A stretch of DNA of 64,000 bases from assembly GCA_002269645.1 (NCBI GenBank), contig NIVC01001126.1:248001-312000 (forward strand), given 5' to 3'. Position numbers and translations under genes: made by a program. The DNA is from Macrostomum lignano. Its lineage: Eukaryota. Shown here piece after piece: positions 6,465 to 64,000 of the stretch; within the stretch, counting starts at the first letter, position 1; every line of letters starts with the position of its first letter. Under the pieces are notes generated by a model. That model did not search any database. It saw nothing but the letters and a program-made list of their open reading frames with translations, and was not told the DNA's origin.

Positions 6465-14344
<7,880 letters not shown>

Positions 14345-27500: not shown

Positions 27501-30500
27501 GTGTCGCTAATGATGTCGTCAATTGTGTCGCTAATAATTTTGTCAATTGTGTCGCTGATGTCGTCAATTGTGTCGCTAATAATTTTGTCAATTGTGTCGC
27601 TAATGATGTCGTCAATTGTGTCGCTAATAATGTCGTCAATTGTGTCGCTAATAATATCGTCAATTGTGTCACTAATGATGTCGTCAATTGTGTCACTAAT
27701 GATGTCGTCAATTGTGTCGCTAATGATGTCGTCAATTGTGTCGCTAATGATGTCGTCAATTGTGTCGCTAATGATGTCGTCAATTGTGTCGCTAATGATG
27801 TCGTCAATTGTGTCGCTAATAATGTCGTCAATTGTGTCGCTAATAATGTCGTCAATTGTGTCGCTAATAATTTTGTCAATTGTGTCGCCAATGATGTCGT
27901 CAATTGTGTCGCTAATAATGTCGTTAATTGTGTCGCTAATGATGTCGTCAATTGTGTCGCTAATAATGTCGTCAATTGTGTCGCTAATAATGTCGTCAAT
28001 TGTGTCGCTAATAATGTCGTCAATTGTGTCGCTAATAATGTCGTCAATTGTGTCGCTAATGATGTCGTCAGTTGGGACGCTAATGATGTTGTCAGTTGTG
28101 ACGCTAATGATGATGCTGAATTGTGACGCTAATGATGATGCTGAATTGTGACGCTAATGATGATGCTGAATTGTGACGCTAATGATGATGCTGAATTGTG
28201 ACGCTAATGATGATGCTGAATTGTGACGCTAATGATGCTTAATTGTGACGCTAATGATGATGCTGAATTGTGACGCTAATGATGATGCTGAATTTTGACG
28301 CTAATGATGATGCTGAATTGTGACGCTAATGATGATGCTGAATTGTGACGCTAATGATGATTCTCAATTATGACACTAATGATGATTCTCAATTGTGACG
28401 CTAATGATGATTCTCAATTATGACACTAATGATGATTCTCAATTGTGACATTAATGATGATTCTCAATTGTGACACTAATGATGATTCTCAATTGTGACA
28501 CTAATGATGATTCTCAATTATGACACTAATGATGATGCTGAATTGTGACGCTAATGATGATGCTTAATTGTGACGCTAATGATGATGCTGAATTGTGACG
28601 CTAATGATGATGCTGAATTTTGACGCTAATGATGATGCTGAATTGTGACGCTAATGATGATGCTGAATTGTGACGCTAATGATGATTCTCAATTGTGACG
28701 CTAATGATGATGCTTAATTGTGACGCTAATGATGATTCTCAATTGTGACACTAATGATGATGCTGAATTGTGACGCTAATGATGATGCTGAATTGTGACG
28801 CTAATGATGATGCTGAATTGTGACGCTAATGATGATGCTGAATTGTGACGCTAATGATGCTGACTAGTGGTGCCAATTTAGATTGACTATTGATGCAAAT
28901 TGAATATAAAAACCTGGGTTGCCCATACTTCTAGCATTAAAAGAGAGCATCGATGAACTTTATTTACTTGGCCGGAAAGGATTCCTCAAAGAGCCCTATA
29001 GAGCTAGCAGTTACATGTAGTAGCAGTCATGTCGGACTGGTTTTCAAAGCGTCAAATGCTTGTATTGTATAAGCACTATGGGCTATAGAAATCGCAGAAG
29101 CAGAGCAGAAAGGCGTGCGCAGATTTCATGACACAGTCTATTTTGCATCTCTAAGAGTTGCAAGTAGGTGAAAGCCTAAGTTGCTAAGCCGATTGTTGTC
29201 ATGGCAACCTCAAGAATAAGCAGCTAGACGTCTGGAACTTTTATTGTTGAATTCAAATCTCAAAGGCTACACGCACAATAGGGATATCCAATGCGTTTTT
29301 GTGACGACAAAAAATTCTAACTGCCTCAATGAGAGCATTTTCAATCCTTTGTAATAATATCTTATCGTAATAATAATCTTATCTCGGGCGCTGTCATCCT
29401 GTTCGTACCCCCCCCCCATCAAAGCATCCGTACCCTAGCAAAGACTAATTGACAACCGTCGTAACTTGCCTATGCAACCAGAGACAGTGCAGTGGCAATG
29501 TACCTCTTCACTATATCCCCAGTGCCTCTCTCGTCTCTTATCTCTTAACATCTGCATACCTAATAAGCTTATGCGATACTTACACTGTCTCTTCTCATAT
29601 CTACCACTTTCTCTTCTCATATCTACCACTTTCTCTTTTCATATCTACCACTGTCTCTTCTCATATCTACCACTTTCTCTTCTCATATCTACCACTGTCT
29701 CTTCTCTTCTCTACCACTTTCTCTTCTCACATCTACCACTGTCTCTCTCATATCTACCACTGTCTCTTCTCATATCTACCACTGTCTCTTCTCATATCTA
29801 CCACTGTTTCTTCTCATATCTACAACTGTCTATTCTCACATCTACCACTGTCTCTTCTCATATCTATAATGATCTACCTTTGATATCCTGATATCTGCTT
29901 CCGTTACTTACACCACCAGTTTCTTGTCATCATTTAGAACAAATATTAAAAGCACACACCGCCTCACCTATGCAGACAGTTAATATTCTCCCTCAGATAG
30001 ATGAGCCCCTTGAGCACGGAACAGCTAATCTTGGCCACAATCGGTTCGGGCAGTCGGCCAGCTTTAGTGAGCACCAGATCTAGCGATCCAGCGTTCATGT
30101 ATTCCATGCAGATGCAGATGGTGGCGGAGGAGTCCACGAAATAGGCGCCGAAGTAGCCGATGATGTAGGGACTGTTGCACGAGTGCAGCACCTGAGGAAT
30201 TGGAAAAGTGCTTATTGAACTTTATTAAACTCAAACCAATTAGGCAGTGATTTCTTTAAGAACCACTAATTTTCCCGAAAACCCGAATTTGAATACCATA
30301 ACCAATTACCTCAGGTTAAGTTGAAATCCTAAACACAACAAATTCGATCCGAATAAGAAATCCCAAATCCCACAAATTTGAATACCACTTTTCCAGATCC
30401 CAATAAGAAATCCCACCAAATCTCACAAATTTGAATACCACTTTTCCAGATCCCAATAAGAAATCCCACCAAATCTCACAAATTTGAATACCACTTTTCC

Positions 30501-32382
30501 AGATCCCAATAAGAAATCCCACCAAATCTCACAAATTTGAATACCACTTTCCAGATCCCAATAAGAAATCCCACCAAATCTCACAAATTTGAATACCACT
30601 TTTCCAGATCCCAATAAGAAATCCCACCAAATCTCACAAATTTGAAAACCATATTCCCAGATTCCAAAAAGAAATCCACCAAATCCCACAAATTCGAACA
30701 CCATATTCCCAGATCCCAATAAGAAATCCACCAAATCTCACAAATTTGAAAACCATATTCCCAGATTCCAATAAGAAATCCCAAATGTCACAAATTTGAA
30801 AACCATATTCCCAGATTCCAATAAGAAATCCCAAATCTCACAAATTTGAAAACCTTATTCTCAGATCTCAATAACAAATCCCAAATTCCAAAAAATTAAA
30901 CACCATATTTCCAGATCCCAATAAGAAACCCCAAATCCCACAAATTCGAATACCATATTCCCAGATCCTAATTAAAAATCCCAAATCCCAGATTAACGTC
31001 GTAGCATCCCCAGACTGAAACTAGAAGTGTAAATTCCATAAAAGTACAAATTCAACAACTAGTGGAACACGAACCTCCAACTCTCTGATAATCTGGGCCC
31101 TAACAGACGGCTTGATTTCCAAATGAATAAGCTTCCTAGCCATAGCCTGTCTAGTGGGCCTGTGCAGCACCCGTTGAACAACGCCAGAGGATCCGGCGCC
31201 CAATTCGGCGATATCATCAAAGTCTTCGTGACGCAATTCGCCTATGCTGCGCTTGCGTTGAACAAATTCTGCCAGACGCTTGCGTTGACTCTCGTCGAGG
31301 TCCTGATGGCCCCGCTGCTGCTGCTCCTGCTGCTGTTGTTTCGCCTGCAGCTGCTGCTGATGCAGACGAAGCTCTAGCGAATTCAAATCGGCGCCGCTTG
31401 GCGTGGTTGCTATGGTGAGATTCATCAGGTTGCGCCGGCTGCCGCAGCCCGAACCGGAGCCAGCCTCCATGCTGCCGGAACTGCTGACGCTGGTGTTGCT
31501 GCTGCTGGCCGCTGCCGCGCCTTCCGCTGCTGCCGACGCCGAGCCAGACGGAGGCGACGACGATGGTGTACCAGCGGATTGGCCAGGCACCTGCAGCGAC
31601 CGCTTCACTGAAGCCGAATTTTGTGTCAAATACAAATAGCTCGTGTGTACTAACAGCTCTGAGTATTAGTTTGCTATGTTGTCGAGGCAGAGATGCTGGA
31701 GACTTGGGGATAGTTTGGTGATGAAGATGCTGAGGATAGTTTGGTGATGAAGATGCTGAGGATAGTTTGGTGATGAAGATGCTGGGGATAGTTTGGTGAT
31801 GAAGATGCTGGGGATAGTTTGGTGATGAAGATGCTGGGGATAGTTTGGTGATGAAGATGCTGAGGATAGTTTGGTGATGAAGATGCTGGGGATAGTTTGG
31901 TGATGAAGATGCTGGGGATAGTTTGGTGATGAAGATTCTGGGGATAGTTTAGTGATGAAGATGCTGGGGATAGTTTGGTGATGAAGATGCTGGGAATAGT
32001 TTGGTGATGAAGATGCTGGGAATAGTTTGGTGATGAAGATGCTAGGGATAGTTTGGTGATGAAGATGCTGGGGATAGTTTGGTGATGAAGATGCTGGGGA
32101 TAGTTTAGTGATGAAGATGCTGGGATTGTTTGGTGATAAAGATGCTGGGGATTGTATGGTGATAAAAATTTTGTGGATTGCTCTAAAAAAATAATCGCTT
32201 CAGAATAATCTAAAATATAAAAATAAATCTTTCAAATTTTACCTAGTTAATTTAAAAATTAACAAAACACTTTACTAGACAAACAGCAGATAGTTTAAAC
32301 CAAAATAATTACCTTGCAACAAGTTGTCGGAACAGGTGCGCAAAGTTGAACCAAACGTTTGAAATCTATGCTTGTTAAACAT
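21580..32382 (-). CDS. MAP2K1: MAP kinase kinase MEK1/2 (MAP2K1/2)
   Basis: Exons 31075-31607 (internal ATG at 31470), 29968-30191, 26667-26992 and 21580-21851 have GT-AG ends and consistent phases; a candidate extra first exon is 32313-32382. Motifs: docking-like [106 protein letters not shown]. The 5' end is uncertain. Confidence 0.93.
21862..23740. repeat. 67-bp highly homogeneous minisatellite in the last MEK intron
   Basis: GGGGCGATTCTCAATGTTTTTGGGGCGATTCTTAGTATTGATATACAGTATTACGATACTGCTTGTA, about 28 copies (starts at 21912 and 21979). Confidence 0.97.
23740..25160. repeat. About 21-23-bp minisatellite (GGGGCGATTCTCAATGATTTCTT) continuing the 67-bp array
   Basis: Same GGGGCGATTCT core with variable T-rich linkers. 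Confidence 0.95.
25700..26657. repeat. 23-bp minisatellite (TGATGTCAGGATGATACTAAATG)n
   Basis: Period 23 (GTCAGG at 26161 and 26184). It runs up to within about 10 nt of the MEK donor at 26665-26666. Confidence 0.95.
27115..28865. repeat. Compound minisatellite: 24-bp (GTCGCTAATGATGTCGTCAATTGT)n switching to 25-bp (GACGCTAATGATGATGCTGAATTGT)n
   Basis: Periods read directly; the switch is at about 28070-28120. Confidence 0.95.
29578..29870. repeat. 22-bp minisatellite (CTCTTCTCATATCTACCACTGT)n
   Basis: Period 22 (29761 and 29783). Confidence 0.92.
30330..30990. repeat. About 53-bp minisatellite (CCAGATCCCAATAAGAAATCCCACCAAATCTCACAAATTTGAATACCACTTTT)n
   Basis: Period 53 (30393 and 30446); about 12 degenerating copies. 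Confidence 0.92.
31700..32165. repeat. 26-bp minisatellite (GATAGTTTGGTGATGAAGATGCTGGG)n
   Basis: Period 26 (31801 and 31827). Confidence 0.94.
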
Positions 32383-47998: not shown

Positions 47999-50900
47999 GA
48001 CGAACCAAGCGAAAAGCTAGGCCAAGATTTAGAGCAGCTGAAGCTGCTAGAAGAATGCCAGTTCGAATCAGAGGAGCCAGAGTCAATGCGCATATCGCCA
48101 TTGGCTAGTGTGGCGCTCTCTGCCAAACTGATGCCACTTTTCCAAGATCGGGTTGATGGCGAATTCTACGTGTTTGATGGCGACTCTTTACTGATGGAGG
48201 CTGCGTCCACAGTGGGGTGGCAATATGGCCAGCAGTTGCATTTGTTCTATCTGGCCGAATCCATTCTGAAACTGCTCAAAGATCACGGCGGTGACTGTCA
48301 AGTTGTTTACTTTAATAGTTTTCGCAATGATCCACTGATGGATCTGTTTAGGCGCGCTATGCAGTTACACCTTGCCGTCAACTGTTCAGTGCCTGTGCAC
48401 ACCGACTTGGCCAAGTCTTGCTTCGACCCAGCCTGGCTTCACTATTTGAAGGAGGAGAAGCCTCTGTTCTTTATGCTTCACGACGGTGTTGGCTATGGCG
48501 AATCTGCCGAACAGCGGCACGTGAATTTGGCTTTGTCTAGCCTGGCTCGCAGGGTGCCAGTTGCTTATGTTAGCAGTCTGCAGCAGAATGACATGAAGCT
48601 GCAAGCATCCTATGTACAGTGGATGCCACTGTATGGCAGACTATTTCAAAAGCTATCATGTACAGATCGATCGGCAATGGTCCCTGAAACTGATGATCAT
48701 GTTGAAGCTTTAAAGACTGAGGCCGAGTTAATTGGTATGTTTTTAAATCTCTTTATTAGTTGATTAAGTCATACATGCGCAACCCCCCTGATTTACACTG
48801 GCCATGCGACTAACTTTTTGACCAAAAATGCGACTTACCTGTGAAAGAAACCCTAAAGAAAAAATTAACGAAATGTTGGGTAAACGGCAAGAGTCACTAT
48901 GACTGTCTTACTAATGCTAAATGCCTCGTCATCTAATTAGTACTACGCCTGTATGTTTTTGGGTGGGTATTTTTACCAGGTCGGCCAGCAGTTGCGCATG
49001 TATGGATTAAGTGTTTATAAGCTTGTTTATTTGAACTGCTGAGCTAATAACTTTATGATTTTTGTTTCTGTTCAGAACCAGGCAGCCGCCTTAAAGACCA
49101 CCTCGCTGTTAGAGTTGCTCTCCGAGCTCTAGTTAAAGATACTAACATCGAAAGCAACGACGAAGTTATTGAAAAAGTGAGCCGCTGGTGCCTGTATTTT
49201 GCCTGCATGTCCACCATGACGCTGGACGACCGGCTTCAGCTTGTTGCTGCTACTAAAAGCGCCAATCAAGCCGCTGCTGCAGGCGACAAGATAGAGGAGC
49301 AAAATTTGCTCTCTTCTTTGCATGAATTGGCCAAGCACCTGCGGCTCGAACTGCTGCCAATGAAGGGTCTCAACGAGTTCGCCGATCCAGAGTCTGTCGC
49401 CGATCTTATCGACATTTTTGTCTATCGTCGATTTGGTCAAGCCTGGATTAACCAACTGCCCGGTTGGCATCCGCGAGCGCGTGAAATTTTGGCTAAGTAA
49501 GTTCAGGCTTCAGTTTTCCGTTTAATTATGCTACAGTTTTTTTGTAATTTTTTAGTACACCTGCCTAAATGAGCAGGTGTGCTTCCTGCTCAGCCGCAGC
49601 TATTGCGCGGCGCATCTGAAGGCTGCGTACGGCCGTTCAGTCCAAGGACTGGGGGGGGGGGTCGCCATACAGCCTCAATAACCCCAGCTAATGCTGGCAC
49701 CCATTTTACAGCTGGGTGAACTGAAGCAATGCAGAGTTAAGTGTCTTGCTCAATCAAGGACACAAATTGTTCCGAGTAAGTCGGACGATAGTGTACGGCC
49801 AATATTAAAACGGTTTCTTAGGCTTCCCGGCTGAGTTTTTAACTTTTGTGACCAGCACAGAGAGAGGAGGAGGTCACGGACACGGAGTATTAACTTGGTG
49901 GATTTTTTTATTTATCCACCAATCGCTGCATATTTCTACGACAGCTTTCGGCAAAACTATTTCAGCCTAGGGACTGACAGAACTGACCTCTGTAGCTAGC
50001 CACGCTATGTCAGCCTAGGACCAGCAAATTCAGCTATGGTCCAACCATACTCCGTAGACACGTGTCTCGAAAAAAAACCAGCTAACAAGTGGTGGTTGGT
50101 TGAGATTGGATGGCCCTATGCTGAGATAGCTAGGCAATGGGGGTTGTCTGGAAGCGAGAAGACATGGTAATGGCCATAGACACGAGCGGCGATAGCGGGG
50201 GTGTGGGAGTGAAGCCCCCACTTACAACCATAGACTATTTTATCTTACGCTCATAGACTGGTTCGTTTTCTAAAATGATATCCCGGTAAATTGCTTTATT
50301 GTCAATTTCAAACGAATGACCGGTCATTGCTTGAATGTCGTTGCCTTAACGTAAATTACCAGTACCATAGACATTTTGAACAATGGCTATGTTTTAACCG
50401 TGACTATAAAAATAACAGGACGGTAAATAGCTCGAGTCTGTAAATTCTGATTTTTAGTGATGCTACATTAATTAAAATTTTTTTTATAACGGCGTTCGCT
50501 TTCTTTCAGATACGAAAGCTACGCCTCTAAAATTTGTACCGAGCTGCAAAAGCTGAACAGTGCCGATCAATCGGATGCCTCGCCTCTATTGTCGCTGTCA
50601 ATCTCTGAGCAGGCGCTCCCACATGAGCCTGTCATTGAGCAGGCGGCTGAAATGGCGCCGCTTCAGCGTATCGACAATCGTCTGTTGAAAGAGTTTGCCG
50701 GCGAAATTCTTGACAAACTTGGCTCGTCTGGTTGCATATCGTTAACTAACGAGCCTGGACAGAACTCGTCGATGCTATTCGACGAGCGCTGTCATTGGCA
50801 CGTTAATCGGGAGCTTCGCGACGATTTAGAAGAGCAAGGCGAGCCTGAGCTGTCTTCTAATCCTATTCTAAGGCAGAGACAGCTGAAGAGTATTCAGAAG

Positions 50901-53900
50901 TACAAGAATTACATCAGCATGTACGGCGAGTCGCTGCATGGCGAGACTAGCGAGACTATCGTACTGTCAACCGGTTCTGACGGCGCGTCCGCTGCATCTG
51001 CCGGTGCTAACGAGAAGCCGAAATCTGCTAACCAGCAAAAGCAGAAGCATCAGAAGCAGCCAAAAGGCAAGTCAAAGCCAGTTTCTAAGGCTGATGCCAT
51101 CAAAGAAGAGAATTTGCGCGCCAAAGCCGACAAAGATACGAAGAAGCTAAAGGAGCAGTGGAAAAATCTGTTGCCGGGCGTTAAAAAATTGGAACCGGCT
51201 CAGGCTATCGCTGAGGCCACGCGTATGGCGGAGTCCTGCACAGTGCAGGATCGAATTTTCGAGGAGCCGGTACTTTTCGTAATGCGAGAGCAGTACAAGT
51301 TGTGGAAGACCAGCTGTGCTAGTAGTGGAGGCAGCGGTAAGTCTTTCAGCGCCTTGGCAGATCTAGTGCGGACCCTGCACAAGTACACAACCGAGCCGTT
51401 GGTTAGCATGATTAGTTCTGAATTGCGCGTCAAGATTGCCGAATTATTTATCATGGTTGGATTTAAAGAGGCTGCCGCTGTCTCTAGTGTAGACGCGGAG
51501 CGCTTAAAACATGTGCAAGTTGAAAAAGAATGCGTCTGTCCACTGAATTATCGCGACTTTCAAATGCAGCACATGGGCCACCTGATGCAGAGAAATGTTC
51601 GATTCGATCCAGATCCCAGGGTGAAGGGATTCATTCCCGACACCTGGCAGAGAGAACTGCTAGATGTGGTTGACAGGCGCGAGTCTGCCGTTATTGTTGC
51701 TCCAACATCGTCTGGAAAAACATTCTGCTCTTACTACTGCATGAAAAAGGTTCTGGAGATGAGCGACGAGGCTGTCGCTGTTTACGTAGCGCCAACCAAA
51801 GCTTTAGTGAATCAGGTTCAGGCTTCCATTAGTGCCAGGTTTTCTAAGCCAAACCTGACTCCCGGCATGGAGCTATGCGGAGTATTCACTCGAGACTATA
51901 ATCACAAAGCCACTAGCTGTCAGATTTTGGTGACAGTGCCGCAGTGCCTTGAACTGCTGTTGCTGAGTCCCAGGCGTCAAGGCTGGGCTAGCCGTATTCG
52001 CTATGTGATCTTTGACGAAGTTCACTGCATCGGCACCGGGATCGGGGGCGTTGTCTGGGAATATCTGCTCTGCCTAATCCGGTGTCCGTTTCTTGCCCTG
52101 TCGGCAACTATCTCTAACAAAGACTATTTTCACGACTGGCTGCAGACCATCAAGCAGTTTGTGCAGGTTCAAGACTCGACTCTTCTGAAGCAATCTCAGC
52201 CGATGCAGCCTAAGAAGCAACAGCGACAGAAAGGTGCCGCTCCTGCTGCTGTAGAAGGTTACAAAGTGAATCTGGTGACCTACTCTGAGCGCTATTCAGA
52301 CATTCGCACTTCCGTTTATCTGCCCAAGAGTGAATTTATTGCTGAAGTTAATCCGTGCGCTTTTCTTAGCGACAAACTATTGCGAATCAACGGATTCCCA
52401 AGGAATTTGAAGCTGTCACCGAAGGAATCTACCGAGGTTTGGTCAGCCGCTTTGCAGTGCTTCACGGACGATCCAGCTGCAGCTAAGGCTCTGCAGAAAT
52501 TTAAACCGCAATCGTTTTTTGGCACTGAGCCAATTACTAGGTAATAATTAATGACCAATCATTTTTTAATGTCTTTAGCCTACCAGTTAAAGCAGGGGTC
52601 AGCAAACCCCGGCCCGCCAAGCCTTTCTATCCGGCCCGCTCAAGGTTTGCGTCTCTTCTTAGCTTTCTTCTCCCTTCTCTTCTCCCTTCTCTTCTCCCTT
52701 CTCTCCCTTCTCTTCTCCCTTCTCTCCCTTCTCTTCCTTCTCCCTTCTCTCCCTTCTCCCTTCTCTCCCTTCTCCCTTCTCTCCCCTCTCCCTTCTCTCC
52801 CCTCTATCATCTCCCTTTTCTCTCCTCTCTCTCATCTCTCTTCTCTTTATTCTCTTCTCTCATTTCTCTCTCCCTTCTTTTCTCTCTACCCTCTCTTCTC
52901 TCCTCTTCCCTCTCTCCTCTCTGGTCTCCCTTCTTTCCCTTCTATCCTCTCTCCTGTCTACTCCTCTATTTCCTCTTCTATTTCTCTTCCTCTGCCTCAC
53001 AGTCATGCGCCGGATTCTTCATCTGGCCCTTGAGGTAAAAAGTTTGCCAACCCCTGAGTAAGACTCTGAAAAGACAAAAGCATACTTGAGCAACACGAGG
53101 CGATTGGATATTTTCCGTGACAATAGCCAAAATAGCTATTTAAACTCTCATTCTCTCAAATTAAATCTCAGAAGAAAAAAAGAACTAATATTTTTTTAGG
53201 TGCTTCCGATATTTTATAATGACCTCGTGTTGCACCTGTAAGGTTTTGGCCCTAAAATTGTGAAACACTTCCCACCCACCGCTTCAATTTAAAAAAACGC
53301 AGAACGCAATTTCGGGAACTGGAAGTCGGCCTGAAATCGACTGTGTCTGAGCTGCTTCGCCAGAGTCCACATGCCAAGTCTACCCAGCTGCTAACTACAA
53401 TTCAGTCAATTGAGGAGCAGCAGAATGTGACTCAACAGTTTGAGTTCCTATCCGACGTTGATCTTATTGAAAAATTTCCCGATCTAATCGATCGGCTGCG
53501 TTCCGAGGGTCGCTTGCCAGCTTTGGTGTTTATGAACGATCGTAAAGGCATTGAAAACCTTGCCGCGTCGCTTGTCGATCGAGCCAATGATCGGATTAAG
53601 CAAGCCGTTAATCCTAATCTGCTAGAGCGCATGGAGAAAGCTCGCGAAGCGATGGCCATCGCCGCCAAGCGCAATCGCGACAAAGAGGATTCGGACGATG
53701 AGAATCCAGCCGAGATCGAATTGGAGTCCTACTACAGAGATCGGCTGGAACTGCGCAGCAAAATTCAGGCCTGCGCTTATTTTAAACCGCAGGCTGTGCA
53801 AGAATCTTTTCTCAACAAAGTGCTGGAGAAGCTGCTTGATGAAGATGTGAAGCATATGCTGGAATTGGGCGTCTGCTATCATCATGCCGGTTGTTCTTCG

Positions 53901-56782
53901 AAGCACCGACAAGCTGTTGAGATGCTGTTCCGTAGCGGTCATTTGCAGGTTAGTTTGGGTTGTTTGCTTCTGTTGTTCAGCTTTGAGTAGCTGCTTTGTT
54001 CCCCTCACCCCACCGGCCCACCTTGTAAGCCGTTATGGAAATCAATCATTTTGCATCAGGTCGCTGAAATATAGTGCCTGCGGCGTTAAAGTGAGTGCCT
54101 GCGGCGTTAAAGTGAGTGCCTGCGGCGTTAAAGTGAGTGCCTGCGGCGTTAAAGTGAGTGCCTGCGGCGTTAAAGTGAGTGCCTGCGGCGTTAAAGTGAG
54201 TGCCTGCGGCGTTAAAGTGAGTGCCTGCGGCGTTAAAGTGAGTGCCTGCGGCGTTAAAGTGAGTGCCTGCGGCGTTAAAGTGAGTGCCTGCGGCGTTAAA
54301 GTGAGTGCCTGCGGCGTTAAAGTGAGTGCCTGCGGCGTTAAAGTGAGTGCCTGCGGCGTTAAAGTGAGTGCCTGCGGCGTTAAAGTGAGTGCTTGCGGAG
54401 CTAAAATGAGTGCACTGCGGCGCCAAAATGAGTGCCTGCGGCGCCAAAATGAGTGCCTGCGGCGCTAAAATGAGTGCTTGCGGAGCTAAAATGAGTGCAC
54501 TGCGGCGCCAAAATGAGTGCCTGCGGAGCTAAAATGAGTGCACTGCGGCGCCAAAATGAGTGCTTGCGGAGCTAAAATGAGTGCACTGCGGCGCCAAAAT
54601 GAGTGCCTGCGGCGCCAAAATGAGTGCCTGCGGCGCTAAAATGAGTGCCTGCGGCGATAATGTGAGTGCCTGCGGCGCTAAAATGAGTGCACTGCGGCGC
54701 CAAAATGAGTGCTTGCGGAGCTAAAATGAGTGCACTGCGGCGCCAAAATGAGTGCTTGCGGAGCTAAAATGAGTGCACTGCGGCGCCAAAATGAGTGCCT
54801 GCGGCGCCAAAATGAGTGCCTGCGGCGCTAAAATGAGTGCTTGCGGAGCTAAAATAAGTGCACTGCGGCGCCAAAATGAGTGCCTGCGGCGCCAAAATGA
54901 GTGCCTGCGGCGCTAAAATGAGTGCTTGCGGAGCTAAAATGAGTGCACTGCGGCGCCAAAATGAGTGCCTGCGGCGCCAAAATGAGTGCCTGCGGCGCCA
55001 AAATGAGTGCCTGCGGCGCTAAAATGAGTGCTTGCGGAGCTAAAATGAGTGCACTGCGGCGCCAAAATGAGTGCCTGCGGCGCCAAAACGAGTGCCTGCG
55101 GCGATAATGTGAGTGCCTGCGGCGCTAAAATGAGTGCCTGCGGCGCCAAAACGAGTGCCTGCGGCGATAATGTGAGTGCCTGCGGCGCTAAAATGAGTGC
55201 CTGCGGCGCTAAAGTGAGTGCCTGCGGCGCTAAAATGAGTGCCTGCGGAGCTAAAATGTGTGCCTGCGGAGCTAAAATGAGTGCCTGCGGCGCTAAAATG
55301 AGTGTATTTGGCGCCAAAATGAGCGCCTGCTTGCGGCGCCAAAACGAGTGCCTGTCTAGGGCGCCAAAACAAGTGCCTGTGACACTAAAACGAGTGCCTG
55401 TGATAGTAAAATGAGTGCCTGCGGTGCAAAAATGTGCGCCTGTGGCGCGAAAATGAGCGCTAACAATACCGATTCCCAAAATAATTTGCATGTAGGAATT
55501 TAGTCATGTACATGTAGAATTCTTGGCTTTATCCCCTCTTCCCACTATAAAATCCCATAGTGTTTTACTTTGGAATCTCTCTCGCGCCCCGTGCAGGTGG
55601 TCACAGCAACTGCCACCCTGGCTCTGGGCGTTCACATGCCCTGCAAAACTGTCGTATTCGCTGGCGATGACAAGTTTCTGGACGCGCTCAACTATCACCA
55701 GATGGCCGGTCGGTCCGGCCGGCGTGGCTTCGACAACATCGGCAACATTGTGTTCTACGGCGTGCCCGCCTCTAAGATTGCTCACCTGATCCAAGCCGAC
55801 CTGCCCGAACTCAAGGGCGGCTTTCCGCTCACCTGCGCTTTCGTTCTCAGACTGTTGCTTCTGACTGGGAATGCCACTGATCCGGAGGTGGCCCACGCTA
55901 AAGCTGCTACGGTTTTGGAGCACCCGTTTGCTGCGCACCAGAAGCCGGATATGATGCAGCAATTGCGATTGTTCTTCCTGTTCAGTGCGGAGTTTCTGCA
56001 CAGGCAGGATCTTATTAATGAGTTGGGCGCTCCTCTGGTGAGTCTCATTGAGTAACAATTTGGCACCGTGTGTTTTTCCCAAGCTGGATGCCATTTAGTC
56101 TAAGAGTCCTTTCACAGTCGTTGCAGGTAACACAGGTAAAATAGTGAAAGAAGTGACTCTCTAGACGACTATAAAACGACGAGAGTCAATTTGAGGCGTT
56201 TTATTGCCCGCGACTCTGAAACTAACAACTGTGTACATTTAGTCTACTTGTGTTAGTAGAAAGTTAAGCTTTAACAACGACTTTTTTTGCGACTCCTTGT
56301 TTTACGATTCTCTGCAACTCACGTGACTCGCTCTCGGCCATTCTTCAGGACCTGGCCGGCTTAGTATGCCACATGGGCTACCAGCAGCCTGGCAACTTCG
56401 TGCTCACCTATCTGCTTCGATCTCCCGCTCTGCGCCAGCTGTGCGAGCCGGCCAGCAAACAGCTGCCGTCAATTCACTACGGATTCTATTGCGAGGGCTG
56501 TCAGACTGGCGAACCGATAGTTGGTCAGCGATTCAAGTGCACCAAGTGCTGGTCTGACTACAGCCTGTGCTCCAACTGCTACTCCGGCCGGCCCAATCAC
56601 AGCCGGGGCCGGCAGCAGCACACGGCCGCCGATTTTGAGCGTCAATTGCCGCCGTTGCGAGTGCAATTCTCCGACGAGACGTTGAGAAAATTGGTTCGAA
56701 TCCTGTGCCACCTGTTCACTAAGATGGAGCTGGCCCGGTCTCTGGTTAAAAGGACGGCTGATGGAGCTCTGCATTATTTAAG
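47999..56782 (+). CDS. DDX60: DDX60-like Ski2-family DExD/H RNA helicase with an inserted ZZ zinc finger; 3' end not found in the window
   Basis: Exons 47999-48734 (first ATG 48086), 49076-49496, 50510-52540, 53303-53948, 55597-56037 and 56349-56782, all GT-AG and in phase. N-terminal DDX60 motifs: FDGDSLL, GQQLHLFYLAE. Also RFDPDPRVKGFIPDTWQRELLD, motif I APTSSGKT, DEVH, SAT, ATLALGVHMPCKTVVF, QMAGRSGRRGFD. Exon 6 ends at a GTAATA donor with no terminal exon before the transposon. Confidence 0.92.
48770..49004. mobile_element. MITE of the CATACATGCGCAAC-TIR family in DDX60 intron 1
   Basis: Perfect 14-bp TIRs; perfect TSD GATTAAGT at 48762-48769 and 49005-49012. Confidence 0.92.
49690..49770 (+). 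mobile_element. SINE/L2-type retroposon fragment (MIR/CORE-like block) in DDX60 intron 2
   Basis: GGCACCCATTTTACAGCTGGGTGAACTGAAGCAATGCAGAGTTAAGTGTCTTGCTCAA..AGGACACA resembles the conserved block shared by MIR/L2-related elements (recalled from memory). Confidence 0.5.
52593..53056. mobile_element. hAT (Charlie-like) MITE with an internal CT-rich tract in DDX60 intron 3
   Basis: TIR CAGGGGTCAGCAAAC / GTTTGCCAACCCCTG, with GGCCCG subterminal motifs. The interior (about 52660-53000) is CT-rich. Flanks AGTTAAAG and AGTAAGAC match only partly. Confidence 0.8.
54072..55440. repeat. 21-bp minisatellite (GAGTGCCTGCGGCGTTAAAGT / GAGTGCCTGCGGCGCTAAAAT)n in DDX60 intron 4
   Basis: About 65 copies; source of the periodic SACGVKV / AAGTHFN ORFs. 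Confidence 0.96.
56475..56636 (+). other. ZZ-type zinc finger domain within DDX60 exon 6
   Basis: HYGFYCEGCQTGEPIVGQRFKCTKCWSDYSLCSNCYSGRPNHSRGRQQHTAADF fits the ZZ consensus C-x2-C...PIxGxRxKC-x2-C..DY.LC-x2-C...H...H.F. Confidence 0.88.
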
Positions 56783-57730
56783 GTAATAAAATACCTGCCG
56801 TTTTTCCGCTAGAATCATTGATGCCGATTGGTAAACCTCTGACAAAATACGTTTATCTTTGCTGATATGCTTTTACCCTACTAGTAGTAGTTCATGCTTG
56901 GAAAATGTTTGCGACGGGGATAGACAAAGAGTTTCTCTACAAATATAGAGCAGTTAAGACGCAGAGTGTACATTCCTCAGGGGTATAGTTTTGTCTCGCA
57001 TAGAAACGCCTAACCGCAGTACCCCTGTGACACTTGTCTCTGCCTGGCTGAAAGCTTGTACTGAGTTAGTAGGCTGGGTTGGAGGGTACCCGCCAAACTT
57101 AATTCGTCCGATTTTTTGCTTTTAGCACCGGTATCTTGATCCGGTTTATTGTCCGGAATCGGCCCATATCCACAGTGTAAAGAAACCGGAACAGAGCCGG
57201 ACAAAAAGTTACGTTTCAGGACCAGGCGTTCAGATTTTATCGCCTTTGCCCTGTTTTATGTCCGGTGATTATTCCGAAGTTTGTTCCGGTGCCTGATCCG
57301 GTCAAAGAGAGCCGGATGTTGCGCCGGTTTTGTTCCGGTGCCTGATCCGGTCAAAGAGAGCCGGATGTTGCGCCGGTTGCTGGACCGTGGCATTGACCGA
57401 TCCAAATGGGATCGAGACCGGACCGAAAGCCGGACCGGCCCGGTTTAATCTTGAACCGTTCTCTCCGGAGCAGGAGGCAGTCTTCCACGCGAATAGAAAA
57501 TGAAAAGAAAATTGAAGAGTTTAAACTGAAGTACTTTTTTTTCAATCCAGGCATTTGTCAACCTTTCCATTTCCATGGCAATTTATTTTTACTTCCGAAA
57601 CATCGAAAGCACCGAACATCGCAAATCACACATGGTCCCTTACAAATGCGTCGCTTCCCTTCTGGCGCTCACAAATGAGTCATAAAGGTGATAAAGGTGA
57701 TAAAGGACGTTCAATTGGCCGAACCAACCG

Positions 57731-59644
57731 TCAAACCGCAAGCTTCAGCAAGTCAACGAGGCTACCGGCCGACTGCAAATCGTCCATGCTCGTGACGAGG
57801 TTAGCCGTCGTCACTGAAGCCGCCAACGTATCCGTAGCCGCAGTCGTAGTCGCAGGCGAAGGGTAAATGAGAACCGGATGGTTCTCATCAGGCTCCTCCA
57901 TGACGACAACGATGGCATGGGAGTCTGTCGTCGAGGAGGCCTTCTTCGGCCTCTTGGTAGCGCTTGGCCTCGGGCCGCTCGATCCGGGCCTCGGGCCGGT
58001 GATACGGCGGCACTTCAGTTTCGGCAGACCCTGGCGAACGCGTGCCGTCTCGCGGCAACGCGAGAAAGCGCGTTGTAGTTGGCGCTTAGTGGCGATGACG
58101 CCAACGTTCTGCAGCCACTGCTTAGCGATAAGCAGTTTGGCTGGGTTAGCGGCAGCAGTCAGCCGGTCCCCCAGCTTTCGGCCCGAGAAATTTGCGCCTG
58201 AAAACTCCGTCTCAGAGAACAGTGCCCGCAAGAGACACCGCAACAGCGACGAATGTTCCGAACGCAGTATTGCGGCGTAGTCCGGACGCTCTTCGTCGAT
58301 GTCCACATGTGGCTGGCCAGCCTTTTCTTTGGCCTGCAAATATGTACGGAGATGAGCTTCCAGTATAGAACGGCTCCCGACCTTGACAAATATATTCGGT
58401 TGGCGGTCCGACAGTGCGACGCGCCCACCGCTATTACTAGCACCGGCCGAGTTTTCAGCGCTGCAGGCAGTCATTATCGCGTGGGTGTCGCTGGCAGACA
58501 AGGCAGCGTCAGCGACGAAGCGTTTGGCCGAGAAATCACTATCGTCCGCGCTATCACAGCTCATGCGTGTTTCGTCGTCGCTGTGACCAGCGACGTGTGT
58601 GCTAGTATCAGCATTGGTGGACAAATTGTCCGGGTCGGCAACAAGCATAGTGGACGCCCTGATCAGGAATGCGTTGCATGATTGCGCCCTGTTTTGCATC
58701 TGCCGAATGACGTTGTCCTTGCGACGAATCTCACGCTCAAGGCTGCTCTCGCGCAGCGCCAAATAGGAGGTTCGCTCCTTCGCGTCGTCCAGACGCCGGC
58801 GCAGCTCCACTTCGGCAGCCGACTTGTCTCGTATCTCGCCTCCTGTCAGTGGAGACAAAAGTTAATGTTACTCCGATCAATCATACATTCCCCAGAACAT
58901 TCAACACTTACTTAGTGTCTCCACTAAGATGTCCGCCTTGCGACTTTCCAGTAGCAGGCTTCGACAGGACGCGCAGCCTCGAGGTGGCTCTCTGGTCGGG
59001 GCGTGCACATTCGTGAGGCGACAAGAAGCCGTCGCTTCTTCACGACTTTCGAAGGGCCCACGGATGAGAGTGCCGATCCACCGACGGGCAGTTTTCCTAT
59101 TACTTTTGGCCACTTTAATGGCAACAACACTCCCAACAGAAACTGGGATGGGTCCGTCGCTGCGGCGCTGCACAATATTCTCCGTAGTGGAGACAACGTC
59201 CGTGCGTTCCCGGGATTCGTCATAGCGCATGATGAAGAAGCGCTCGGTAGGCTCTTGCTTGTACGGGAGCATATCGGATCCTTCTTTCGACGGGTTGCCA
59301 CCGTCCCGGTTGACTCGCCTGCCACGTGTGTCTCGATCGCCAGAATCAGTAGCTGAGCACCCCGCCTCATGGGCGAAGCAATCGTCTGCGTCTGCACCAT
59401 TGGGCGTCGGATTTGCGGTTGGCGGCTTAGGTATGGTCGTCTGGACAGCATCGATCACGGGTGTTAGCGTGTCACTGCCAGCTGGTAGATTACCATTCGC
59501 AGCTGGCTGATCGTCCTTCGGCTTCGCCTTCGCCTTCTTCAGAGATCTTGGAGCTTTAGACTTCGAAGCAGTACTAGCCGCAGCGGCGGGAGCTGCGGGA
59601 GCGGCAGCTTTTTTTCCGCTTGCGAAGCAGGTCGCCTTGCCCAT
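57731..59644 (-). CDS. Transposon accessory protein with coiled coil and BEN domain, 2 exons, about 614 aa
   Basis: Exon 58912-59644, then a 69-nt GTAAGT..CAG phase-1 intron (58843-58911), then exon 57731-58842. Coiled coil ELRRRLDDAKERTSYLALRESSLEREIRRKDNVIRQMQ. BEN-like segment SSLLRCLLRALFSETEFSGANFSGRK..ANPAKLLIAKQWL..LQRAFSRCRETAR. Confidence 0.75.
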
Positions 59645-60355
59645 TTAAAGACTGTAAGACATGGAGCAGGTTTTGAAATTAGGTAATTCCACGTAGAGAT
59701 GACAAAACTCACGAGTAAGAAAAGTGTGTTCGCCTGCTTCTACGAAGAGACATGCAAGATGTACAGTATGTGCCTAGGCGTGTAGAAACTCGAAACTAGA
59801 ACGAAAAAGGGAACTAGATTATGCAACATCTATAGTATGCAAGAAACTATACTACAGTTAATAGAGTATGCAAGTTAAAGAACTTTCGAAAGAAGACAGC
59901 TGACAGATACCCAGCGCTACGCGTGGAGCTGCAGCTCAACAAAAGCAAATCGTTGTTTTTATTGGCATTTCGTCTGTAGCTCCCAGCTCTTCTCCAGATC
60001 CAGACTCCATCATGCAGTCAAAAAGGTGGTAACGAAGAATAACATTAAAAACATACCTCCCCTGTTTACTCCCATGCAGAATTACATGGATGCTGCCACA
60101 AGAAAATTAAGTAGGTATATGTGCACATGTGTAGTTCGCTTAAGAATCAAACAACAACAATCAAACAATAGAGCAAGTTTTTTCTATTGCGCAAATCGAA
60201 ATTACCGTGTCAATGCCTACACTGAGTAACATACTAACGTCCCTCACTAACTAACTCACTCACTAACCTGGAGTCAGTCACGCCTTCGAGAGGATCAAAA
60301 AGTCGGGATCTAAAAAAGTGTGGCTTTTAGTATGCTGCCCAGTATATCAGTCCAA

Positions 60356-61339
60356 TCAATTCTTTCCGTGGGCCTTCTTCTCCTGCTGGAGCTCACGCAG
60401 ATCCCTTAGTGGCCGTCTGCGGCGGCGTAGCGGTCGCATTGCCGCCACAGGTGCTTCCGGCGGAGTCTCGGGCATGTCAATCGCCCAGAACTGACGTGGA
60501 TCCGCAATGGGTTTCGGTTGGTTCGACCGGTGTTTGCCGGCCTGCTGCAGTCGTCTTTGGCGGCTTTCTGGAGACAGGTTAGAATACCACGACTCGCAGT
60601 CCGGACAGCAGTGCGCCTGCAATTCTAGCCTGTCGGCTTTGCGCCTGCATGGGAAGACGCACGCCGGTCTCGAAGTCCTCTCCGGCAACAGGTTGTAATC
60701 AGCGCGGATTTGAGAAGACGACATGCCGGCATACAGGCCTGCAAAGAGACTGACCCGGCGGCTGGGTTCCGGTGCCGGCTCTGCGGCGGGTGGTACGTGG
60801 TACATGTCAGGGCCCTGCGTCTCAAAACCCTCCTCGTCGTCGTAGTTGAACCTGTCGACTGCCTCGGGTTCCGGTGCCGGCTCTGCGGCGGGTGGTACGT
60901 GGTACATGTCAGGGCCCTGCGTCTCAGAACCCTCCTCGTCGTCGTAGTTGAACCTGTCGACTGCCTCGGGTTCCGGTGCCGGCTCTGCGGCGGGTGGTAC
61001 GTGGTACATGTCAGGGCCCTGCGTCTCAGAACCCTCCTCGTCGTCGTAGTTGAACCTGTCGACTGCCTCATCGGCGGGTTCCTCATTCGATGCCGCCACG
61101 GGTTTCGCTAGCACAAGTGGAGTCGAATCGAAAGGCCACATCGACTGCAACACTTGCGTACTAGGAATGTCATCTAATGCGACGATGGCCCTATGCGCCC
61201 GCACCATGGACCCCGTGTTAAAAACTGGCGACGTGGGACGTGAACGGCCGAGTCGAAGGAGCTCAGAACGGAGCAAACGGTTCTCCTCTGTGAGGGCGCG
61301 GCAGATGGGACAGCTGGCTGCGTGTGACCAGTGGTCCAT
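60356..61339 (-). CDS. RBBP8: Intronless CtIP/Sae2/Ctp1-like protein (327 aa) inside the CACTA element
   Basis: The C-terminal block RRKADRLELQAHCCPDCESWYSNLSPESRQRRLQQAGKHR...DPRQFWAIDMPETP aligns almost without gaps to recalled human CtIP [40 protein letters not shown]...TPENFWEVGFPSTQ. There is an N-terminal CxxC plus short coiled coil (CPICRALTEENRLLRSELLRL) and a basic C-tail. This is a homologue; orthology to the host gene is not established. Confidence 0.85.
   Translation of the reverse strand: MDHWSHAASCPICRALTEENRLLRSELLRLGRSRPTSPVFNTGSMVRAHRAIVALDDIPSTQVLQSMWPFDSTPLVLAKPVAASNEEPADEAVDRFNYDDEEGSETQGPDMYHVPPAAEPAPEPEAVDRFNYDDEEGSETQGPDMYHVPPAAEPAPEPEAVDRFNYDDEEGFETQGPDMYHVPPAAEPAPEPSRRVSLFAGLYAGMSSSQIRADYNLLPERTSRPACVFPCRRKADRLELQAHCCPDCESWYSNLSPESRQRRLQQAGKHRSNQPKPIADPRQFWAIDMPETPPEAPVAAMRPLRRRRRPLRDLRELQQEKKAHGKN
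60765..61070 (-). repeat. Three in-frame 102-bp (34-aa) tandem repeats inside the CtIP-like ORF
   Basis: CGTAGTTGAACC at 60841, 60943 and 61045. Peptide EAVDRFNYDDEEG(S/F)ETQGPDMYHVPPAAEPAPEP. Confidence 0.95.
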
Positions 61340-61940
61340 CGCTGTAAAATTGGGGTAATCGTTATGGCGCTGAAGCGCGTTACCGTTCGAAATTCACAGC
61401 TATTCAACATACTGTGTATACAGCATACTATACTGTACTACAACTAATAGAGGTGCTGGAACTAGTCGTACAGTAACTATAACGATACAAATACAGATCA
61501 CAGCAGAAACTGTCGCTGAGTTTGATTTCGACGTGAACGAGTATGTCCGATGACATCCTAGATGCTATAGTCATTGTACAAACGGAAGCAGAAGACAACA
61601 GAAAGTCAATGTGTTTTAACTCCTTTAGTTTTCGTCTCGTTTATTTCAATACCTACCTTAATTATATACCTTAGTGTTACATAGAACGGAAGAATTGAAA
61701 CTATAACTTTCATTTTTTAGGCGAAGAAACACATCATCACATTGTCTTAACTTCGAGCAATGAAGACATAACAAACGCTTGTACTGCTGTTCTCGTTGAG
61801 ACAGTCTGACTGGAGCAAAATAGGTGTACATTTTTGGGTGGGCGTGACAGGAATTGGATATGTATTGTTTAGCCTCGGACCACTTAGTCATCTTAGCCAG
61901 TAGTTAGCGACAAAACAAAGCACCGAAGCATCCGAGTGGA

Positions 61941-64000
61941 TCAATGATATGACAACTGTGGGTGAGGCAACAGTGCGATGTGGCTCTCGGAAAGGACACA
62001 CGAACCGATGACATCCTCAAGCGGTAGTAGTAGCGGATCTCCGTAGTCCGCCAAATCGCCGAATGGATCGGCTGCAAGCCGCCGCACGTGAGCGCAACGG
62101 CAGCCACGCCTAGCGGAATTGCCACGTACAGCACATAGTGCCTCTAACGGGTCCTGATCTGGTTCGCGGACCGGTAGAATTAGGACCCGAAGTGACACTT
62201 GTGCACCGGTACTACTAATGGCTTCAACTCGTGCAAAACGAAATGTCGTCGGACGAAACCCGGAAATTGCAACGAAACACGATGCTACAGTGCGGCGCAG
62301 TGGGCGGTTATCGTTTTGTCGGCTGATGAAAACTACAATGACCAGCCCTGAGGGCAGTGTCGCACTGCGCCACCCATCCAGCATGCCATGCGGTCGTCGA
62401 AGAACTATGGAGTTACGGAGAACGATTTCCGTGCGCCGATGGCTCCGTTGTCGCCTCTCCAAGCCCTCAGCACCTAGCAGACGCGCTCCAATCTGGTTGG
62501 CGGCTATCTGTCTCTCCACTGACGTAACCACGTCAGCCTCGTTGTTGCTCGAGCCATGAAGGAGCTGTTGTAATCGTTTGTGCATGGTTTCGAACAACCC
62601 AGTTGATTGATGATGTATCGGCCCACCGGAGTCTACAGCGCTCAGCATGTGGCAGCAAACTTGATGGGCGTTGTACGTAAGCGCCCGAGTGGAATATAAG
62701 CGCGGTAAATTTGCGAGGAAGCATCTGAGGGACACCTCGACGTGGTCCAGTTCGTCCTTTGGCCCACCTTCAAGTCCCATCCAAAACACAGCCGTTGATA
62801 GAACTAGTAAATGGTTGTAGTGGTCCGGCGGCAGAAAATCACCCAGAACGAGCGGAGCGAACACTAAAATCCACATTTCTAGTTCGTGTCCACGAAGATG
62901 GCGCAGGTCCTTCAGCTTCCTAACACTGTGGCGTTGCACTGATCGTGGCACGAGAATGCGATTGAGACGCTCGCCGACATCGCCAAGTCTGGGGTGCAGG
63001 TCCGGACAGTTAGTGTCTGCACGGTCTGGCTTCTCATTGCGGATTGCGAACATCTGTAGCAATATCCGACGAACGAGCCCGCCGCACAACTGGTGCAAAT
63101 AACAGGGCGGACAACCTTTTATAAAATCAAAGCCAGGCAGCCTGCTTAGAGGAGAGTGTCCGTACACACCGAGTACGTCGCGGCAAGTACCACCGCCGTT
63201 GCTCACATGTAGATCGGCAAGGTGCGAAGTGTCAGCAGCATTACGCACTGTTGTCTGTGTACAGCCTAGCATAGCAGGAGCGTTCAACATGGCGGGTGTA
63301 GCTTCGACGTGAAAAAGTCGCCCGCCGCCTTGCAAGTAACCGGTCCGCAGATAGCATTTGTCGCAGTATTTTCCGGAAAAGCGACGCATGCATAGAGCGT
63401 CCGCCCTCGCCGGGGCGTCCATCATCCCAAGGAGGGGATGGAGGCGCAGGACGCAAGTCTCGCCGTTGGCGTTGTTGTACGTTACACCTATGGTACGCAG
63501 GCTGGACAAGACGTTTACCATAACAGGCAGAAATGCGGCGGCCTTGACTTTTTGCTTGCCAGCCCACACTCCTGCGATGAAAACGTATCGCAGTTTAACT
63601 CGGTCGTGTACCTCTACGATGGAAATGTAGAATGGGCACACTTCGACGCAGCTAGTACTGAACCGAGGAAAACCATCGAAGCAGAAAACGTACGACAGAT
63701 CGGCTCGGCGCTGTACATCGATGACCTCCAGAAAGTCTCGGTACAACGAGCTGTTGTACACGTGCAAAACGTCCGGCTGCACGTCGCGGTCAGCAGGCCA
63801 AACGACGTTGTCAAGAAGTCCACCGCTCTCGATAGACTGTCGGATCTGCTGACGCACGTCGAATGCGTAAAAGTTGGCCACAGATTCTTCGCCGCAGTGT
63901 GCACAGACGTCACCATCGGAAACGTGCCGAAAACGAGTGCGACGCATGCAGCTATTGCAAACGGCGTTGCAAACCGTCGAACCAATCGCTGACTGCGCTG
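61941..64000 (-). CDS. CACTA/EnSpm DDE transposase (TnpD/Tnp2-like), open through the window edge
   Basis: The frame has no stop from about 63998 down to the stop codon at 61941-61943. It has an N-terminal Cys cluster, CFDGF (D at about 63676), GVWAGKQK, MMDAPARA (D at about 63418), FSGKYCDKC, GVYGHSPLSRLPGFDFIKG, CYLH (C/D-x2-H motif), RGHELEMW, TYNAHQ and GPIHHQSTGLFE (E at about 62590). Confidence 0.9.
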   Translation of the reverse strand, partial: AQSAIGSTVCNAVCNSCMRRTRFRHVSDGDVCAHCGEESVANFYAFDVRQQIRQSIESGGLLDNVVWPADRDVQPDVLHVYNSSLYRDFLEVIDVQRRADLSYVFCFDGFPRFSTSCVEVCPFYISIVEVHDRVKLRYVFIAGVWAGKQKVKAAAFLPVMVNVLSSLRTIGVTYNNANGETCVLRLHPLLGMMDAPARADALCMRRFSGKYCDKCYLRTGYLQGGGRLFHVEATPAMLNAPAMLGCTQTTVRNAADTSHLADLHVSNGGGTCRDVLGVYGHSPLSRLPGFDFIKGCPPCYLHQLCGGLVRRILLQMFAIRNEKPDRADTNCPDLHPRLGDVGERLNRILVPRSVQRHSVRKLKDLRHLRGHELEMWILVFAPLVLGDFLPPDHYNHLLVLSTAVFWMGLEGGPKDELDHVEVSLRCFLANLPRLYSTRALTYNAHQVCCHMLSAVDSGGPIHHQSTGLFETMHKRLQQLLHGSSNNEADVVTSVERQIAANQIGARLLGAEGLERRQRSHRRTEIVLRNSIVLRRPHGMLDGWRSATLPSGLVIVVFISRQNDNRPLRRTVASCFVAISGFRPTTFRFARVEAISSTGAQVSLRVLILPVREPDQDPLEALCAVRGNSARRGCRCAHVRRLAADPFGDLADYGDPLLLPLEDVIGSCVLSESHIALLPHPQLSYH

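Follow-up and report, generated by a model that had tools for sequence, protein, structure and literature searches.

The 64,000-nucleotide stretch of contig NIVC01001126.1 analysed here (positions 248,001 to 312,000; hereafter the window) carries on its minus strand, at 60356–61339, an open reading frame (ORF) of 327 amino acids (aa) that is related to the DNA end-processing factors CtIP, Sae2 and Ctp1 and that lies, judged from sequence comparison, inside a copy of a DNA transposon. Taken from the ORF list, the frame is intron-free and runs open from ATG to stop over 984 nt (stop codon included) with no internal stop or frameshift, confirming the intronless 327-aa ORF reported in the initial annotation, an earlier reading of the same DNA. 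Along the minus strand, a transposase gene, the CtIP-like ORF, a second element gene (gene 2) and the element terminus follow one another, all in the same orientation, and the only known relative of this element carries no CtIP-like gene.

The relationship to the CtIP/Sae2/Ctp1 family was assessed with profiles, homologue searches and residue conservation. The initial annotation had proposed a comparison with the SAE2/CtIP C-terminal profile, and Pfam PF08573 (SAE2) indeed matched the ORF with 22.4 bits (gathering cut-off 19.8; E 2.7e-4); the match is short, placing 32 residues (261–292) on profile positions 78–108 of 110. When the C-terminal 132 aa were searched exhaustively against a set of 1.84 billion representative proteins, 112 homologues were retrieved at E ≤1e-3, each aligned at its own C-terminus, and PF08573 scored above the cut-off in nine of the ten homologues that were scanned, two of the ten also matching CtIP_N. 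In BLASTP alignments the conserved C-terminal domain and a lineage-specific basic tail span residues 213–322 (60374–60703, minus strand), and the C-terminal third reads ..CRRKADRLELQAHCCPDCESWYSNLSPESRQRRLQQAGKHRSNQPKPIADPRQFWAIDMPETP... It includes a CxxC motif, C245-P-D-C248 (60596–60607), whose columns are Cys in 98–99% of the 112 homologues; K269-H270-R271 (60527–60535) in place of RHR, with Arg at the first position in 81% of the homologues and the retained His and second Arg present in 100% and 96%, respectively; and P281-R-Q-F-W285 followed by P290-x-T292, with D-P-R-Q-F-W at 60485–60502. Across the 112-domain alignment the ORF retains the conserved columns R232, R237, L240, C245, C248, Y252, H270, R271, P281, F284 and W285, so that the C-terminal signature noted earlier (CxxC, KHR for RHR, PxxFW..P) is borne out residue by residue.

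Because the Pfam score, the 112 C-terminal homologues and the retained residues agree, we regard the ORF as a genuine member of the CtIP/Sae2/Ctp1 family and not as a chance motif. A chance ORF, or a decayed pseudogene with a fortuitous motif, would account for a Pfam match of 32 residues that exceeds the cut-off by only 2.6 bits, but not for the E values of the two nearest homologues (7e-24 and 5e-14, from alignments of ~110 residues), for the family matches as a whole, for the retention of conserved residues or for the undamaged frame; with a probability that is practically nil, this explanation is ruled out by the homologues, the alignments and the conserved residues. The full ORF returned no match in a word-indexed homologue search, probably swamped by its low-complexity repeats; its exact product has no database record, and a comparison with PDB sequences gave no match. 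Besides the Lys of KHR, one further residue departs notably from the family pattern, at a position of potential regulatory importance. Immediately before the conserved Pro281 the ORF has Asp280, where Thr is found in 68% of the homologues, leaving no phosphorylatable Ser/Thr-Pro at this position, which we take to be the cyclin-dependent kinase (CDK) site in front of the FW motif (T847 in human CtIP, S267 in Sae2).

The remainder of the protein consists of a short N-terminal region and an acidic, repetitive middle. An N-terminal CxxC (C10-C13) is followed by the short helix-like stretch LTEENRLLRSELLRL (61246–61312, minus strand, from the translation). The initial annotation had described an N-terminal CxxC with a coiled coil; the CxxC stands, whereas the coiled coil is unconfirmed, given a helix-like stretch of only ~20 residues, no match of the CtIP_N Pfam profile to the ORF, and lengths of ~55–60 residues for the corresponding stretch in the homologues P0003 and P0114. 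The N-terminal stretch of the ORF matched P0003 weakly (LRSENAMLKQQLLR; E 0.16) and, by eye, also P0114 (LTAENRRLKFAL), and a search for an upstream exon that would extend the N-terminus found none. The middle of the protein contains an in-frame tandem triplication (3 × 102 nt, 99% identical; 60764–61069, minus strand; TRF and repeat finder) encoding AVDRFNYDDEEGSETQGPDMYHVPPAAEPAPEPE, a 34-aa unit with an acidic DDEEGSETQ module, which together make up about a third of the ORF; repeats as near to perfect as these imply recent change. A 'SETQGP' motif attributed to human CtIP was unconfirmed among the retrieved homologues and was not used as evidence.

A protein with this build might act as an antagonist or decoy: a CtIP with a short N-terminus would bind the Mre11-Rad50-Nbs1 complex (MRN) through its C-terminus and acidic repeats, form no tetramer, damp host resection or checkpoint signalling at breaks made by the element and favour end joining. 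The shortened N-terminal helical region, the failure to find either a CtIP_N match or an upstream exon, and the triplication of a putative interaction module would all be expected under such a scheme. However, conservation is poor at the N-termini of CtIP proteins, and CtIP_N likewise fails to match the closest homologues. Moreover, Sae2 needs no more than its C-terminal part to promote the MRX endonuclease, according to work cited in PMC4551917, so that a short N-terminus does not equate to inhibition. We consider an inhibitory role quite improbable.

The genes on either side of the CtIP-like ORF belong to one element family. Upstream lies a transposase ORF (61941–63947, minus strand), represented in the window by its C-terminal 668 aa; ~195 N-terminal residues, like the other end of the element, lie beyond the window. 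This ORF is 50% identical over 98% of its length to P0001, an 863-aa protein encoded on the Tara Oceans contig L001 and its single homologue in a word-indexed search of 5.8 billion protein clusters. Downstream lies gene 2 (57731–59644, minus strand), delineated by homology to L001 7509–8237 and 8575–9342, which combines the ORFs 58901–59644 and 57731–58858 as exons of one gene: exon 1 (58912–59644), a 69-nt intron (58843–58911, GTAAGT..ACAG) and exon 2 (57731–58842), whose frames join to give 614 aa after splicing. In L001, too, the homologous codon of gene 2 is followed by a GTAAGT donor (..ETL|R versus ..DTL|R). Beyond gene 2, the element terminus and CCGG-rich subterminal repeats occupy 57089–57480 (plus strand). 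The terminus, CCCGCCAAACTTAATTCGTCCGATTTTTTGC at 57089–57119, is unique in the window, and the sequence starting there (CCCGCCAAACTTAATTCGTCCGATTTTTT..) aligns with both 33-nt terminal inverted repeats (TIRs) of L001 and continues into similar CCGG repeats. Because of this alignment and the shared CCGG repeats that follow, the window is taken to hold one end of an element running from 57089 past 64000. The subterminal region also contains a perfect tandem repeat of 49 nt × 2 (57280–57377), which, by analogy with En/Spm, may be a candidate binding-site array for the gene 2 product.

The CtIP-like ORF is separated from both neighbours by AT-rich spacers. The upstream spacer (61340–61940, minus strand; GC 0.40) contains an AATAAA at 61645, following the transposase stop, and a splice-acceptor-like ttttacag that ends 2 nt short of the CtIP-like start codon. 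In the downstream spacer (59645–60355, minus strand; GC 0.41), an AATAAA occurs at 59963, and an acceptor-like cttacag precedes the gene 2 start codon by 7 nt. The CtIP-like ORF, gene 2 and both L001 genes all have an acceptor-like YnCAG 2–19 nt upstream of their ATG, which is absent at two host genes of the window. Lying on the inner side of the terminus at 57089 and between two conserved element genes, the CtIP-like ORF can be placed inside a DNA-transposon copy whose other terminus is beyond the window, in agreement with the initial annotation.

A resemblance was also seen between the N-terminal SCPICRALTEE of the CtIP-like ORF (61301–61312) and the CxxC that closes exon 1 of gene 2 (window 58912–58990; L001 ~8120–8185), which reads SCPSCKQLMTE in L001 and CASCRSLLLE in the window. 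The observed score was reached by 7 of 1000 shuffles for the L001 version and by 59 of 1000 for that of the window. The idea that the N-terminal CxxC was copied from gene 2 exon 1 was rejected, the DNA showing no similarity and the protein similarity being marginal. The two closest CtIP homologues do not have this N-terminal CxxC.

The related element on L001 (1–10198; 10.2 kb, Tara Oceans) is complete and ~9.95 kb long. Its 33-nt TIRs (CCCGCTGAAAAAATCGTCCGG..), at 97–129 and 10011–10043, start with CCCGCTG, and CCGG-rich repeats lie subterminally at both ends, the tandem repeats there being of 153 nt and 111 nt. About 3.8 kb without long ORFs precede the transposase, downstream of which two ORFs homologous to the gene 2 exons follow in the same order and orientation as in the window. 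TBLASTN detected no CtIP-like sequence in L001; its transposase–gene 2 spacer is 1 kb long and contains no ORF of more than 61 codons, the same spacer measuring 2.3 kb in the window. Because L001 has no CtIP-like sequence, we conclude that the gene was acquired in the branch of the element family to which the window copy belongs and is lineage-specific. The initial annotation had held that element copies lacking the ORF would speak against its proposal; L001 does lack it, yet with a transposase only 50% identical it is a distant relative and not a sister copy, and the objection applies in part. No second copy or fragment of the element was found in the rest of the window by BLASTN and TIR search, and scans of metagenomes and viral contigs with transposase and CtIP alignments revealed no further element copies or CtIP loci. 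When the spacers of the window were compared with L001 and with each other, coding regions and subterminal repeats alone aligned, and hallmarks of a nested insertion or a retrocopy around the ORF, such as direct or inverted flanking repeats or a poly(A) tail, were not found.

The element had been labelled a CACTA transposon in the initial annotation, a label we do not retain. CACTA/EnSpm termini follow 5'-CAC(TA)..(TA)GTG-3' (PMC12730594); the terminus at 57089 reads CCCGCCAAAC.. and the L001 TIRs begin CCCGCTGAAAAAA, that is, CCCGC and not CACTA. Neither TNP2/Transposase_21 nor any other Pfam family matched P0001 (E ≤10) or the window transposase (E ≤1), a profile of the two transposases had no match among PDB sequences, and BLASTP against the Chapaev Garfield_BM transposase (sequence from a paper supplement) showed no significant similarity. 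An AlphaFold model of the transposase based on the two sequences was unusable (pLDDT 30.8). Inspected by eye, DGF, DAPARA, CDKC, P-DLH, AHQVC-H and LFE are invariant between the two transposases, with no statistical support, and follow the CMC order D..D..C(2)C..[M/L]H..H(4)H..E, the motif names being those of the Chapaev supplement; in this motif order alone the transposase resembles the CMC superfamily. The transposase family has no Pfam model and appears to be undescribed in profile libraries. The L001 flanks (..ACAAT and CCTCA..) show no matching target-site duplication, which in CACTA/EnSpm elements measures 2–3 bp, and the far flank of the window element lies beyond the window. In En/Spm, a CACTA element, two genes encode the transposase TnpD and TnpA. 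The window element is like En/Spm in having a large transposase, a second spliced gene and short subterminal repeats, and differs from it in its CCCGC termini, in the lack of a Transposase_21 match and in that no target-site duplication could be read. The name BEN, given earlier to gene 2, fares no better: neither gene 2 nor its L001 homologue matched Pfam (E ≤10), and a profile of the two homologues gave only spurious matches to PDB sequences. The earlier placement of the ORF between the transposase and a BEN gene is correct in position and orientation and unsupported in the BEN label.

The insertion is flanked by a host DDX60-like gene (48086–56786, plus strand) with exons for PIN-like_DDX60, DEAD, Helicase_C and ZZ domains, recognised through Pfam and homologues, the best DDX60 homologues being 51–57% identical. 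Because a GT donor (56780–56790) closes the last exon seen in the window, ~300 nt short of the element end, the element is placed antisense in an intron of this gene or just downstream of it. This arrangement bears on a further explanation, in which the ORF would be the host's own CtIP gene and the surrounding transposase and accessory ORFs element fragments or domesticated genes. Such a gene would be expected to have the full-length architecture of the Macrostomum lignano host CtIP gene, which the ORF does; no second CtIP locus was demonstrated, and the integrity of the element is unproven, its far end being beyond the window. Nevertheless, the ORFs on either side correspond to the two conserved genes of a single element family, with the order, orientation and intron position seen in the TIR-bounded L001. 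An element terminus lies at 57089, none of the three reading frames is interrupted, and the block as a whole runs antisense within the DDX60-like gene or directly downstream of it. A resident host gene would require a nested intronic gene to have been hemmed in by two truncated insertions, independent of each other yet complementary, and we consider this improbable.

The closest relatives of the ORF shed light on its origin. The best match was the hypothetical protein PAA54340 of M. lignano (P0002; 395 aa; E 7e-24, 53% identity over 113 aa), followed by P0003 (E 5e-14, 39% identity over ~110 aa); the two stand well apart from the next-best homologue (E 3e-8). The gene for PAA54340 has three coding exons and is located between acetyl-CoA synthetase and EMP24 genes (L002 9780–13069), with no homologues of the element proteins within 10 kb; it looks like the ordinary CtIP gene of M. 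lignano. The PAA54340 cluster includes a second, partial model of 481 aa; the hypothetical proteins of M. lignano are PAA54340 and PAA88737 (Mlig004387 g2/g1). PAA54340 clearly belongs to the family but fails the Pfam SAE2 model, its FW being FF, and this probably explains an annotation as no more than a hypothetical protein. P0003 is encoded by a 315-aa ORF without introns on a metagenomic contig of 1.6 kb (L003, 1–1603), where minisatellites with the common core GTCGGCGAGAGCAAC lie on both sides of the ORF and an acceptor-like tttcag occurs 12 nt upstream of the ATG. With such a site also present at L003, the acceptor-like sequence of the window ORF may belong to the captured gene and not to the expression system of the element.

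Three features beyond the family signature are common to the ORF, PAA54340 and P0003: a basic tail that follows the domain, (K/R)RR(H/R)RPL, with a C-terminal RRRRPL; an acidic mid-protein motif of the DDEGSET type; and an N-terminal L(T/R)xEN(R/A)xL motif. Alignment of the ORF with the M. lignano protein is confined to the C-terminus; the M. lignano protein differs in its longer N-terminal helix, its single acidic motif and its multi-exon gene. Because the closest homologues are likewise short (395 aa, the 481-aa partial model and 315 aa), a CtIP of 300–500 residues is normal in this lineage, and compactness is an inherited feature and not an adaptation to the transposon. The compactness noted in the initial annotation is accounted for by the lineage, since the closest homologues have the same architecture.

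The observed/expected CpG ratio was 1.05 for the CtIP-like ORF and 1.09–1.23 for the element ORFs, values compatible with the shared CpG-rich composition that had been claimed, but host exons span 0.70–1.21 and the similarity has no discriminating value. For codon usage, the log-likelihood ratio per codon (element versus host) was +0.033 for the CtIP-like ORF, against −0.006 to +0.036 for element ORFs and −0.09 to +0.033 for nine host segments; the codon usage of the ORF is weakly element-like, which is suggestive only. Elsewhere the window holds an exon of the SRP receptor beta-subunit (16935–17558, minus strand; Pfam SRPRB, E 9e-37) and an exon with the start of a protein-kinase domain (31021–31635, minus strand), both of ordinary animal host genes. 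The region is rich in minisatellites, with long coding-like repeat ORFs (e.g. 20674–21493 and 27256–28151) and, in an intron of the DDX60-like gene (54073–55457 region), a 21-nt minisatellite of 65 copies. No tRNA or Rfam families were found in the window.

These results leave two main accounts of how the gene came to be where it is and what it does. According to the first, it is a passive passenger: a host CtIP was transduplicated recently into one copy or sublineage of the element, plays no part in transposition and is intact because it is young. The lack of the gene in L001, the single copy seen (the window holding neither a further copy nor a fragment), the near-perfect repeats with their implication of recent change, and a closest homologue that is an ordinary multi-exon host gene all conform to this account, as does the acceptor-like site at L003, which perhaps makes this site part of the captured gene. 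Set against it, genes captured by DNA transposons are usually fragments, whereas this one is whole, with none of the strongly conserved residues lost; the ORF sits neatly between the element genes, in their orientation, with its own spacers and polyadenylation signal; a random capture would rarely hit upon a factor that processes the ends of double-strand breaks; and codon usage leans, weakly, towards the element. Transfer of cargo between transposon lineages has been described as frequent but passive for TET/JBP genes (PMC12730594). We regard a passive recent capture as a real possibility, nearly as likely as a helper function.

The account that we tentatively prefer, while rating it at somewhat less than an even chance, is that the ORF represents a near full-length CtIP/Sae2 paralogue of the host lineage, captured at the DNA level by a cut-and-paste transposon, which may help MRN to process transposase-generated ends. 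Capture would have placed the gene in the spacer between the transposase gene and gene 2. The protein, if expressed, would be a co-activator of the MRN endonuclease; at transposition it would help to clear transposase-capped or hairpin-capped ends from the empty donor site, resection would start, and homologous repair from the sister chromatid would be favoured, with the result that the element would be restored at the donor site. Several properties of the family are compatible with these steps. The CxxC and RHR motifs of Ctp1 are needed for clipping protein-linked ends (PMC4551917), and hairpin-capped ends are processed by MRX with Sae2. When Ac/Ds excision was assayed in yeast lacking Mre11 or Sae2, revertants were not recovered, although Pso2 was the main hairpin opener (PMC3299998). 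Asp280 and the triplicated DDEEGSETQ module would be weakly consistent with an escape of the protein from the cell-cycle control of the host, which we infer from the residues only.

Several observations weigh against a helper function. Hairpin ends are putative for this transposase family, and expression of the ORF is a premise of the proposal. A neutral capture of very recent date would just as well leave an intact ORF with 99%-identical repeats. Oligomerisation is important for CtIP and Ctp1 and, because the N-terminal helical region is short and no upstream exon was found, may be impaired in the ORF product. The Asp280 position is Ala in PAA54340 and Thr in P0003, indicating a site that drifts within the lineage. 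In addition, the only known relative of the element lacks the gene, the element copies examined number one (n = 1, that of the window), and neither CpG nor GpC observed/expected ratios discriminate the element from the host.

A stronger version of the proposal holds that the element not only recruited the CtIP/Sae2 gene but also adapted it, with Asp280 as a phosphomimic and a tripled SET(Q) module, so that MRN would be called to transposase-blocked or hairpin-capped excision breaks at any stage of the cell cycle and repair directed to homologous recombination, with restoration of the donor copy. We judge such an adaptation rather unlikely.

In comparison with CtIP, Sae2, Ctp1 and Com1, the co-activators of MRN/MRX, the ORF is alike in its short N-terminal helix, disordered acidic middle and conserved C-terminus, and it differs in being transposon-encoded, in its length of 327 aa, in having no CtIP_N match, in KHR for RHR, in Asp for Thr and in the triplication of 34 aa. 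Other transposons carry cargo genes, among them those for RPA-like proteins in Helitrons, an XPG-like nuclease in Academ and a ULP1 protease in CACTA/MULE elements. Eleven transposon lineages of fungi, EnSpm among them, have TET/JBP dioxygenases as cargo (PMC12730594), and KolobokP has a His-Me finger endonuclease (PMC9587614). As in these cases, a host-type gene is found here beside a transposase, with an activity that may plausibly serve the element; however, those cargoes recur over many copies and families, whereas the present gene is seen in one copy and is absent from one relative. The uptake of host sequence at the DNA level resembles transduplication by Pack-MULE and CACTA elements, but in those it involves fragments in a non-autonomous carrier, whereas here a complete uninterrupted coding sequence resides in an apparently autonomous element. 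Paper searches on CtIP or Sae2 together with transposons turned up no description of CtIP/Sae2 as transposon cargo, in accord with the statement of the initial annotation that it knew of none.

Cut-and-paste transposons depend on the repair of double-strand breaks by the host, and the fate of the empty donor site, rejoined or copied back off the sister chromatid, determines whether the element just changes place or increases in number as well. If the helper function holds, the element would directly carry a regulator of the host's choice of double-strand-break repair, and a DNA-end-processing factor would join the short list of functional cargo in eukaryotic DNA transposons, which includes TET/JBP proteins, nucleases and RPA-like proteins. 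The ORF would then also represent a compact natural CtIP variant that could be assayed for its action on MRN, on hairpin-capped or protein-blocked ends and on repair outcome. If the gene is a passive passenger, it would be an unusually clean uptake of a whole gene by an autonomous element. In either case, the locus documents a poorly described transposase family with CCCGC termini and no Pfam model.

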